Shown here in pieces: positions 56,083-57,970 of a DNA stretch of 64,000 nt. The DNA is taken from the sequence record NC_048792.1. One strand, written 5' to 3'. The notes under the pieces were generated by a model. It had not been told where the DNA came from. It worked only from the letters and a program-made list of their open reading frames with translations, and did no database searches. Within the stretch, counting starts at the first letter, position 1, and the number at the start of each line of letters is the position of its first letter. A program made the position numbers and the translations under genes.

Positions 56083-56350
56083 TAGAAGCTGCATCAAGTA
56101 ATCATTTAGTTCAATTAACTCCAGGGTCGATTGTCGGTAACTAAGTGAGATTCAGCTACAAGCGGGGATGGATCCCCACTAACTATTGGAGAGCTTTAAG
56201 GGTACGATCTCAATCGTCCGGGTTGTGGAACAACTTCCGCACACTAGTGCGTTGGTTTAGGGTTCGAATGCCTTAAAGGTAGCGCATGATAGATGCGAGC
56301 AACTAACACGAGGCGACATTACGCGCCTACTCCAATCAAGACGAATTCCT

Positions 56351-56435
56351 GGTAGGTTACTCAAGCGGCAACGAGAACAGACTGTAAATCTGTCGCCTTC
56401 GGGCTTCGATGGTTCGAGTCCATCACCTACCACCA
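56351..56435 (+). tRNA. trnY: tRNA-Tyr (GTA)
   Basis: Acceptor GGTAGGT/ACCTACC, anticodon arm ACAGA-CTGTAAA-TCTGT, long variable arm, GTTCGAGTC T-loop, and encoded CCA. Confidence 0.95.
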
Positions 56436-56443
56436 AATCAATG

Positions 56444-56521
56444 AACCGAGTAGCTCAACTGAATAGAGCACCGTCCCGCTAAGACGGCCGTTGGAGGTTC
56501 AAATCCTTCCTCAGGTTCCCA
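56444..56521 (+). tRNA. Atypical tRNA, anticodon GCT (nominally Ser) on a short-variable-arm body
   Basis: D arm GCTC/GAGC, anticodon arm CCGTC-CCGCTAA-GACGG, T arm GGAGG-TTCAAAT-CCTTC, and CCA. It has C33 and a bulged A in the acceptor stem. Confidence 0.7.
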
Positions 56522-56822
56522 AACAAAGCCCGAAGACGTTCGGGTAAAGTCGTCCCATTTAATTCCCTACTACTTAAGTTACGGTAGATACAGTTAATTG
56601 GGGTGCGATAACAATGACACTTGTCCCCCAAAGCCCTGGGTACTGCACCCAGAAAAAGAGGACTGGCAGCCAATACATAGCGACCAATGGTTAGCTAGAG
56701 CAGCCTTTATAACTCCGTGAAATTCGGAGGAGTGTCTCCCATGATGTCCTCATTGTAGAGGGAGGTTGATTGTAGTCAACCTGTTGTGAAACGAATCTGC
56801 AGTGAGGACTTCTTAACGTTTT

Positions 56823-56910
56823 ATCGAGATAGTCTACTTAAACCTAGTGAGGAATTCGACGGCGGATACGTCCGTAAGACTACGTAGGTTCGATCCCTAC
56901 TCTCGATCTA
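56823..56910 (+). ncRNA. tRNA-like RNA 1 (acceptor and T arm, no anticodon arm)
   Basis: ATCGAGA/TCTCGAT, GTAGG-TTCGATC-CCTAC, and central stem TAGTCT/AGACTA. Confidence 0.6.
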
Positions 56911-57217
56911 GTTAATAGACATCCTAAGAGATCGGTGAAATGACTGCTACTAATCATAGCGGTCTGCCCCCGTTACTACCTGAGAACGGAAGATGTCTGG
57001 GGTACGATATTACACACTACGTTAATCAACCGGGGTGCAACAGGTCAGGGCTTAAACGCATACCTGAGATCCACTTACCATCTATCGGGTGTTGTGGTGT
57101 GTAATCCATTTAGCTAACATGAAGATCGCTATCTACTATTTAAGGTTTTTGATAGCCAAACCATGAGGAAGTTAAACTGATCGGTAAACAACTTCTGTTT
57201 GTCGGTTAAAAGAACAA

Positions 57218-57345
57218 TGACGCCTGCACGTAAAAAGCAGCCTGCGCCAGCTGGGCGCGGTGGGGGCTAAGTGCCAGCAACTGTTGTGGCGAGATCGCGG
57301 CAACAGCACCGGAAAGCCAGGTGCGATTCCTGGGGGCGTCACCCA
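57218..57345 (+). ncRNA. 128-nt expanded tRNA-like RNA ending in CCA
   Basis: TGACGCCT/GGGCGTCA followed by C-CCA, T arm CCAGG-TGCGATT-CCTGG, and three or four internal hairpins. Confidence 0.6.
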
Positions 57346-57347
57346 AT

Positions 57348-57424
57348 TAGGTACGTAAGTCTCAAGTGGCCGCATTCATCTGCCCGCTGCCTAAAGACTT
57401 TGTGGAATGGATTCCGCGTACCTA
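57348..57424 (+). ncRNA. tRNA-like RNA 2, same topology as 56823..56910
   Basis: TAGGTAC/GTACCTA, central stem AAGTCT/AGACTT, and T-like arm GTGGAA-TGGA-TTCCGC. Confidence 0.5.
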
Positions 57425-57460
57425 AAAACCAGTAAGTTAAACTAATAGGACGATTCTACG

Positions 57461-57970
57461 ATGACTATCCTTAATCGCGATATGATCATGCAAGAACTCT
57501 TAAACTCAATAGATCCTGATGCAGGCCCATGTCTTGGGCTTAGCAGGGAAAAAGAGTTAGCCGAAATTTATACGCTAGGATTCAAGGCACCTCGCCAAAC
57601 GGGGTCTACGTATTGGCTTATCGAAAAACTCATTGAGGATCGTAACTCAATTGTAATTTTGATTAATAGCGACTTTAAAGAACACTTCCTAGCGGATGTT
57701 GAGAAATACCCTAAAGTCATTTTCGACAAGTGTCTTAAATATGGACCATCTGTTGAACGGGGTATTCTTAATGGCGACAAAGACAATATAGTCGATCGTT
57801 GCTTCACTGCCAGGGAATTCTTAAACGCTGACCTAGAACGTCACCGCTACGCCACATCGGTCTTCTTTGATGGCGCGTCGACGATTGCTAGTAAGATTAA
57901 TCTTAATGCGTATTACCGAAAGTTGGCCAAAGAAGTAAAAGGTTATCCGGTTACTTGGCTGATTAACTAA
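57461..57970 (+). CDS. Degenerate P-loop protein with a terminase-like Walker A
   Basis: KAPRQTGSTYWL and VFFDGAS. Confidence 0.6.
   Translation: MTILNRDMIMQELLNSIDPDAGPCLGLSREKELAEIYTLGFKAPRQTGSTYWLIEKLIEDRNSIVILINSDFKEHFLADVEKYPKVIFDKCLKYGPSVERGILNGDKDNIVDRCFTAREFLNADLERHRYATSVFFDGASTIASKINLNAYYRKLAKEVKGYPVTWLIN

Follow-up and report, generated by a model that had tools for sequence, protein, structure and literature searches.

Comparative sequence analysis of a giant tRNA-like RNA family in the tRNA arrays of enterobacterial jumbo phages

Introduction

RNAs which share part of their structure with tRNAs have been described in several settings. The tRNA-like domain of tmRNA combines an acceptor stem and a T arm with a large non-tRNA body, and tmRNA is a substrate of RNase P. 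In bacterial tRNA-Sec an 8-bp acceptor and a 5-bp T stem give a 13-bp geometry. Among phages, the closest described system is species 1 RNA of phage T4 (RNA C, rnaC; NC_000866, 70908-71046), a 139-nt RNA encoded at the end of the T4 tRNA cluster on the strand of the tRNAs, which is stable and whose role is still not established after 50 years (PMC3014915, PMC9697503). There is no Rfam family for rnaC. Two further groups of tRNA-shaped RNAs act outside ribosomal decoding. The non-proteogenic tRNAGly of Staphylococcus aureus, which serves cell-wall synthesis and not the ribosome, is marked by a UGC or UGU T loop instead of UUC and therefore lacks pseudouridine-55 (PMC7826273), and mascRNA and menRNA (RF01684) are non-decoding tRNA-like folds which are cut by RNase P from a longer transcript (PMC8457004).

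In this work we analysed an oversized tRNA-like element in Serratia phage Moabite, a phiKZ-like jumbo myophage. The window analysed was the first 64 kb of the Moabite genome (MK994515, 273,933 bp), and window coordinates are thus identical to genome coordinates. A first-pass annotation of the window, made from the letters alone, had proposed a giant tRNA-like RNA in this region with an encoded CCA end and a non-decoding function. We compared this proposal with homologues from related phages, with shuffled sequences and with the known classes of tRNA-like RNAs.

Results

The giant RNA gene, called copy 2 in the following, is 127 nt long (57219-57345, plus strand) and lies inside a tRNA island with few annotated ORFs, between the tRNA-Tyr and tRNA-Ser genes upstream and gp081 (start 57461) downstream (Table 1). 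These two tRNAs, both of class II, are the only ones retained by Moabite beside the giant RNAs. In GenBank, the region of copy 2 is covered solely by an antisense hypothetical CDS, gp080.

Table 1. Coordinates of the main features of the Moabite RNA island and of the parts of copy 2
Feature	Position	Strand	Support
tRNA-Tyr(GTA)	56351-56435	+	ARAGORN and Rfam; genuine tRNA in the same RNA island
tRNA-Ser(GCT)	56443-56521	+	ARAGORN and Rfam; genuine tRNA in the same RNA island
Copy 1, paralogue of the same family, 127 nt	56615-56741	+	Model R2, 77.6 bits, E = 1e-12; also picked up by the acceptor/T-arm scanner
CPT_Moabite_080 (gp080), annotated CDS antisense to the giant RNA	57172-57375	-	Annotated only in Moabite and Yaphecito
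Copy 2, leader base -1 (U), proposed last nucleotide removed by RNase P	57218	+	U in 18/23 and C in 5/23 distinct members
Copy 2, acceptor stem 5' strand GACGCCU	57219-57225	+	Pairs with 57334-57340; 97.5% of cells pair in the family, 6/7 pairs compensatory
Copy 2, composite arm in the D position	57226-57274	+	RNAalifold consensus; MFE fold of the 2050HW copy
Copy 2, hypervariable hairpin CUGUUGUGGCG-AGAU-CGCGGCAACAG in the anticodon/variable-arm position	57281-57306	+	Retained in the 2050HW clade
Copy 2, T arm: stem CCAGG/CCUGG, loop UGCGAUU (57322-57328)	57317-57333	+	100% of cells pair in the family; 3/5 pairs compensatory
Copy 2, acceptor stem 3' strand GGGCGUC	57334-57340	+	Family alignments
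Copy 2, 3' tail A73-C74-C75-C-A	57341-57345	+	ACC in 21/23 members; next two bases variable

A covariance model built from Moabite copy 2 only (R1) gave a full-length match in Erwinia phage AH06, but was too narrow and missed even the Moabite paralogue, copy 1. Further members were collected, starting from AH06, by BLAST, pattern scans and a second covariance model of the family (R2); the E-values of both models are rough. The resulting 23 distinct homologues, 108 to 222 nt in size, come from at least seven phage groups: Moabitevirus, Agricanvirus (including RAY, Rebecca, Deimos-Minion, Desertfox and Ea35-70), Erskinevirus (phiEaH2, Stratton and Asesino), Wellingtonvirus (Kwan and Wellington), Seoulvirus (SPAsTU), Machinavirus (pEa_SNUABM_43 and pSal-SNUABM-04), Proteus phage 10, with a weak match, and uncultured phages, of which several contigs of 250-290 kb carry members. 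The copy 2 element is found in all Moabitevirus genomes (Yaphecito, Haymo, Kodama, Totoro, 2050HW, BUCT660 and Pectobacterium phage ParM-25), and conservation of the family extends to genera with helicases only about 33% identical. Searches with R2 in phiKZ, SA002, pEa_SNUABM_37, Centimanus, Eowyn and KpGz_1 were negative; the family is thus accessory and may play a minor role.

Outside of phages, a scan of 185,579 prokaryote genomes for the family signature yielded 18 matches, all of them with an unpaired T stem, an unpaired acceptor stem or both, and the family appears from these sequences to be phage-specific. A pattern scan of metagenomes gave 37 matches, five of them cleanly paired; four of the five belong to the family (two from contigs or phages already in the set and two further close copies), while the remaining one (L089) is doubtful. 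The ten matches of an IMG/VR scan for the 17-nt T arm were all unrelated tRNA-like sequences or chance. Three of the IMG/VR contigs, from unrelated phages (L010, L013 and L014), carry tRNA-sized tRNA-like sequences which have, as read by eye, a UGCGAUU loop, and T loops with G at position 55 may thus be a wider variant among phage tRNAs. The GenBank records examined had either no annotation for the family or an antisense ORF in its place, and literature searches found no description of it. The family of these enterobacterial jumbo-phage tRNA arrays is previously unannotated.

The homologues were used to revise the proposed structure of the acceptor end. An 8-bp acceptor, TGACGCCT/GGGCGTCA, had been read from the Moabite letters, where all eight pairs can indeed be formed, but the eighth pair (U57218-A57341, position -1 with position 73) is U-A in 16 members, C/A in five and U/U in two, so that it is unpaired in 7/23 homologues, and no compensating change was seen. 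Because the eighth pair is without family support, the acceptor is best read as 7 bp (G57219-C57340) with A57341 as the discriminator. The earlier reading of a discriminator C followed by an encoded CCA likewise gives way to A73 and C74-C75 followed by variable bases: the tails of the 23 members are ACCCA (9), ACCCU (5), ACCAA (3), ACCUU (2), ACCUA (2), UCCCA (1) and UACCA (1), with C, U or A at position 76 and a conserved ACC from which copy 1 of Moabite departs with UCC and into which the Proteus copy fits uncleanly. Most of the genuine tRNAs of the same loci, unlike the family, end in an encoded NCCA.

The family signature comprises a pyrimidine at -1, G1-C72, A73-C74-C75, the acceptor sequence GACRCY, which is more constant than pairing alone demands, and the T loop U-G-N-R-A-N-U. 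The perfect T stem CCAGG/CCTGG with the 7-nt loop TGCGATT noticed in the first reading is present in the sequence and pairs throughout the family. The T-loop pattern holds in 23/23 members with G55 invariant and position 56 free, while all genuine tRNAs picked up in the same phages have UUC at positions 54-56. Positions U54, R57 and A58 build the T-loop fold, and the U at position 55, which becomes pseudouridine in tRNAs, is replaced by G55 in the giant family. The invariant U54-G55 is consistent with a non-decoding role, a reading which draws on the parallel with the S. aureus tRNAGly and is not in itself a test. An elbow contact, in which T-loop position 56 would pair with the first arm's loop, was also considered; it fitted four of five lineages by eye, about the chance level, and was dropped.

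Between the acceptor and the T arm, copy 2 carries two arms that are not those of a tRNA. In the composite arm, a closing stem GCAC/GUGC (57226-29 with 57271-74) encloses the hairpin CUGCGCC-AGCUG-GGCGCGG (57242-57260), so that the proposed CTGCGCC/GGCGCGG hairpin is retained as part of the consensus. The stem abutting the acceptor, which is 4-5 bp long in relatives, recurs with changed letters across the family (GCAC/GUGC, GUCC/GGAC, GUCA/UGAC, GUCU/AGAC and AUCU/AGAU), and for this reason the GCAC/GUGC model for nt 9-57 was favoured over a separate GGC/GCC mini-hairpin; the latter can be found in the sequence as had been proposed, but it competes with the GCAC/GUGC stem, which the RNAalifold consensus fold prefers. 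For the Moabite copy itself the analogy with relatives favours this pairing, the arm being invariant within Moabitevirus and its pairing therefore modelled. The second proposed hairpin, CTGTTGT..GCAACAG, is present and is kept (nt 64-89) in the 2050HW clade despite different letters, whereas the GGTG/CACC stem suggested to close a sub-domain can form in Moabite but is lost in the 2050HW clade, where CACC is changed to TATA. The Moabite and 2050HW clades differ almost exclusively within nt 60-98 of the RNA (57277-57315), where the hairpin at nt 64-89 shows one U-A to C-G exchange; in the remaining approximately 88 nt the only changes are at nt 23-24. The MFE fold of the 2050HW copy is the same as the consensus fold.

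Taken alone, the Moabite sequence provides little statistical support. The MFE z-score of copy 2 was -1.56, which is unremarkable, and when both strands of dinucleotide-shuffled windows were scanned for a 7-bp acceptor immediately adjoining a 5-bp T stem whose loop is T-like, the pattern was expected about 2.0 times per shuffled window. With an NCC tail added, the expectation was 0.07 in comparison to three observed, all of them within the tRNA island. Since these single-sequence statistics are weak, the case rests on the comparison with relatives. In a model-based alignment of the 23 distinct homologues, 98.5% of cells were paired over the 12 acceptor and T-stem pairs (7 + 5), and changes on both sides were found in 9 of the 12 pairs. 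None of 500 shuffles of this alignment reached the observed pairing or covariation, and when the pairing partner was slid by 1-3 columns as a control, pairing fell to 39-56% of cells. The alignment was fitted to the model structure and leans that way, but an independent count based on MAFFT agrees, which answers the concern of structural bias. The Agricanvirus subgroup, folded separately, showed the same four-way layout with seven compensatory pairs: the acceptor leads straight into a composite arm (GUCA...UGAC), from which a linker runs to a long hairpin, five of whose pairs are compensatory, and a further linker of 13 nt precedes the T arm. As judged from these sequence comparisons, the giant element is shown to be a gene for a conserved, structured RNA which has the 12-bp top half of a tRNA but lacks a decoding arm, and we consider it very likely to be a genuine functional RNA.

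In all loci examined, members neighbour tRNA genes or are interspersed with them; where the strand was mapped it was that of the tRNAs, and gaps of 4-6 nt are frequent. The member of RAY begins 6 nt after tRNA-Asn, that of phiEaH2 lies 5 nt after tRNA-Glu and 4 nt before tRNA-Asp, in the order Tyr-Glu-[element]-Asp that is shared by Asesino and SPAsTU, that of Kwan follows tRNA-Ser by 5 nt, that of Proteus phage 10 lies between tRNA-Glu and tRNA-His, and that of pEa_SNUABM_43 is arranged likewise at tRNA genes. In the tRNA array of Erwinia phage Stratton (L044:1790-1909), and also in Asesino, a 120-nt 'tRNA-Ile(aat)' is annotated which is far too long for a plain tRNA and may be an oversized tRNA-like RNA or an intron-bearing gene.

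Other elements of the Moabite island were recorded along with the two copies. Copy 1 has the T loop UGAAAUU and the tail UCCCA; its orthologue in Haymo, 2050HW, Totoro and Kodama is 166-167 nt long, ends in ACCAA (L002:856-1021) and contains a repeated GGCAGCC...GCAGCC motif which is also found in the phiEaH2, Kwan and SPAsTU copies. Two small tRNA-shaped RNAs with a three-way junction and a common central AGUCU/AGACU stem lie on the plus strand at 56823-56908 (with a canonical UUCGAUC T loop) and 57349-57423 (with a 6-bp hairpin closed by a 4-nt loop, z = -2.5). As each of them lies downstream of one of the giant copies, a two-RNA unit may have been duplicated in tandem long ago; a wastewater contig carries a 92%-identical copy of the former small RNA alone. 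A strong 63-nt hairpin (56746-56808, plus strand, MFE -32 kcal/mol, z = -5.6), conserved in all Moabitevirus genomes, is located between copy 1 and the first small RNA. At about 56210-56275 (plus strand), in a region annotated as CDS gp075, there is a remnant of another tRNA-like element, whose T arm is destroyed in Moabite because 12 nt are missing after 56265; its 2050HW counterpart (L004:532-599) scored 30 bits against the mascRNA-menRNA model, below threshold.

The island itself is variable. A 297-nt insertion (56909-57205), which of the genomes compared only Moabite and Yaphecito have, splits it and contains gp079, an orphan ORF of 54 aa with no family match; in relatives without the insertion, 56908 is followed immediately by 57206. 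Turnover among close relatives is also seen in the tRNA slot before tRNA-Ser (L002:688-767, L003:164-769, L007:579-661), which is occupied by tRNA-Tyr in Moabite and 2050HW, by an HNH nuclease gene in Totoro and, in Haymo, by an odd tRNA annotated as Asn to which ARAGORN assigns no definite anticodon. Among the neighbouring proteins we recognised only a generic GNAT acetyltransferase and a zinc ribbon; gp081 belongs to an unknown PHROG, and no partner protein was found.

The element was further tested against the known classes of RNA. ARAGORN made no tRNA or tmRNA call on 57218-57345, and Rfam cmscan, both at the gathering threshold and at E = 10, returned no match on it. Of the features of canonical tRNA (RF00005), the 7-bp acceptor stacked on a 5-bp T stem with a 7-nt T loop is present, while the D arm and the anticodon arm with its 7-nt loop are absent, and U54-U55-C56 is replaced by a T loop with G55 in all 23 members and a varying position 56. 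The silence of both programs and the two non-tRNA arms of the consensus folds bear out the claim that a canonical anticodon loop is lacking. An intron-containing tRNA was rejected, with no group I intron or tRNA match at E = 10 and no call by intron-tolerant ARAGORN; with the architecture conserved across genera, the first-pass description of a tRNA-like RNA gene without a decoding arm was upheld. For tmRNA there was no ARAGORN call, no G3-U70, and no tag reading frame or pseudoknot set; tmRNA is 260-400 nt long with G3-U70, in comparison to 108-222 nt in the giant family, where pair 3:70 is C-G in 21/23 members and U-A in 2/23 and never G-U. The 8-bp acceptor and 5-bp T stem of the first reading would have copied the 13-bp geometry of tRNA-Sec, but the 8/5 geometry was rejected as well, the eighth pair being without support, with no RF01852 match at E = 10 and no UCA anticodon arm.

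The remaining candidates are likenesses rather than matches. T4 RNA C shares with the family its location in a phage tRNA cluster, tRNA-like ends and a size of 120-140 nt, and its MFE fold is alike, with a terminal stem, a long irregular arm, a hairpin of about 26 nt and a T arm beside the 3' strand of the terminal stem. Homology to RNA C was rejected, in that R2 matched its T arm alone (5.7 bits, E = 0.37) and R1 gave no match. In RNA C the T loop is the canonical UUCGAAU and the terminal stem is imperfect, whereas the giant family has G55, a clean 7-bp acceptor and the ACC tail; the best reading, by analogy of layout and location, is that the family is an analogue and no detectable homologue of T4 RNA C. 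The Staphylococcus tRNAGly differs in having a full cloverleaf and a Gly anticodon and in being charged by GlyRS, while the giant family is without an anticodon arm. The mascRNA and menRNA are eukaryotic, about 60 nt long and fold into a cloverleaf with a degenerate anticodon loop, and the giant element has no Rfam match. Since the family did not pass the tests for canonical and intron-containing tRNA, tmRNA, tRNA-Sec geometry and the Rfam tRNA-like RNAs, it was classed with the tRNA-like stable RNAs of phage tRNA clusters.

Discussion

Several other explanations could be given for such an element, and the comparative data bear on each of them. That the locus codes for protein, either as antisense gp080 (67 aa) or as a 17-aa sense ORF from the ATG at 57217, is scarcely credible. 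It is true that gp080 is annotated by GenBank in Moabite and that every Moabitevirus genome has the 17-aa ORF in intact form. However, a 1-nt indel within the nt 64-89 hairpin reduces gp080 to 35 aa in 2050HW, BUCT660 and ParM-25, and it is unannotated in most relatives; with a frameshift in three genomes gp080 is no conserved gene, and its annotation is probably spurious. The sense ORF has just seven codons in AH06, its ATG is made of an A together with U(-1), G1 and A2 of the acceptor, and substitutions follow base pairing, not codons. The earlier statement that the RNA holds no internal ORF thus remains true in substance, even though these two frames are present. A decayed tRNA gene, or a tRNA split by an intron or insertion, is very improbable. 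Such an origin could be expected inside a tRNA cluster whose tRNA slots turn over and in which another tRNA-like element is visibly degenerate in Moabite (a 12-nt deletion), but decay does not fit conservation with compensatory changes across genera with helicases at about 33% identity, no D-arm or anticodon-arm exon halves flank the insert, and the searches for group I introns and tRNAs at E = 10 and with intron-allowing ARAGORN were silent.

A purely cis-acting processing element, by which an RNase P site would punctuate the transcript, for instance at the 5' end of the gp081 mRNA, and the excised RNA would be functionless, seems unlikely to us. In Moabite, copy 2 and the small tRNA-shaped element at 57349-57423 do stand directly upstream of gp081 (57461), and tRNA-like punctuation is known, e.g., from MALAT1 mascRNA (PMC8457004). 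In Erskinevirus, Seoulvirus, Wellingtonvirus and Agricanvirus, however, the element lies between or after tRNA genes, which are RNase P sites themselves, with no adjacent ORF, and although a minihelix suffices for cleavage, 60-150 nt of internal structure are conserved and co-vary. In these tight arrays the neighbours are already RNase P sites and there is no mRNA end to process, so that the RNA product, and not the cut, is probably under selection; the function is probably the RNA product itself rather than a mere processing signal. Such a product could be aminoacylated by an anticodon-blind synthetase after repair of its CCA and could then donate the amino acid outside translation or be bound by EF-Tu, a role which we hold to be improbable. 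The acceptor/T minihelix and A73-C74-C75 are conserved, and a GNAT gene lies 1 kb downstream. The family has A73, the discriminator used by LeuRS. U54-G55 is a hallmark of the S. aureus non-proteogenic tRNAGly (PMC7826273). Against this, CCA is not conserved in register and 9/23 members are without any CCA; no known anticodon-independent identity element was found in the family, the one for AlaRS being absent because 3:70 is C-G or U-A and never G-U, and there is neither a D loop with G18G19 for LeuRS nor G73 for SerRS. The GNAT protein is a generic acetyltransferase of 158 aa and not Fem-like, and no phage aminoacyl transferase or CCA enzyme was seen.

The reading we prefer, and consider likely as a whole, is that of a non-decoding tRNA mimic which is co-transcribed with the tRNAs and released by RNase P. 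From its context, the giant RNA would be transcribed together with the neighbouring tRNAs. The features expected of an RNase P substrate are present in the sequence, namely the acceptor/T minihelix and the classical determinants U/C(-1), G1-C72 and A73-C74-C75 (with R73-C74-C75 available for pairing with the P15 loop), which are conserved in the family, and host RNase P would be expected to cut at U57218/G57219. Exonucleases would then trim the 3' end back to the C-rich tail, with repair by the host CCA-adding enzyme as a possible further step; a phage enzyme of this kind (PF01743) was found in none of Moabite, AH06, phiEaH2, SPAsTU and phiKZ. More tentatively, the stable RNA would accumulate and may act in trans, as a tRNA mimic, on a protein recognising the acceptor/T-arm half. 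The tRNAs of phiKZ depend on the non-virion RNA polymerase and the phage nucleus (PMC12571901), and by extension the giant RNAs are probably middle or late products. No RNA run containing the locus was found, and the sequences that matched 56100-57500 (1,401 letters) were DNA from relatives together with a small number of short wastewater contigs, none of them informative on RNA ends; the wastewater contigs, labelled 'RNA-Seq', are sparse and probably DNA.

As a tentative extension of the tRNA mimic, one which may well prove wrong, the family could serve in RNA counter-defence, an RNase P-released, tRNA-shaped decoy titrating a host nuclease or toxin directed at tRNA. The idea was suggested by several observations: the family is accessory and confined to phages that infect Enterobacterales, the acceptor sequence varies less than base pairing alone would permit, hypervariability of the arm in the anticodon/variable position is seen in Moabitevirus as well as in Agricanvirus, Moabite keeps just the class II tRNAs Tyr and Ser beside its giant RNAs, and Septu and retron-Eco7 attack the variable arm of tRNA-Tyr, to which phages reply with their own tRNAs (PMC13096335, PMC11555353). 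Enzymes of the Septu/retron-Eco7 type or acceptor-end toxins are possible targets, as candidates only, and it is conceivable within the decoy reading that the fast-evolving hairpin in the anticodon/variable-arm position is a bait tracking the host enzyme.

Conclusions

Odd stable RNAs from phage tRNA clusters, T4 RNA C and D, have been on record since the 1970s, and no role was ever found for either. A tRNA-like RNA supported by covariation is now seen across many jumbo phages of Serratia, Erwinia, Salmonella and Proteus, with G55 in the T loop as a sequence rule which separates the giant RNAs from the adjoining decoding tRNAs and in which the non-ribosomal tRNAs of Staphylococcus are alike. 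The family is tractable, with a covariance model, clear boundaries and two copies in a culturable phage, and annotation pipelines should drop ORFs of the gp080 type at these loci. If the RNA binds a host protein that handles or cleaves tRNAs, an RNA mimic would join the contest between phage and host over tRNAs.
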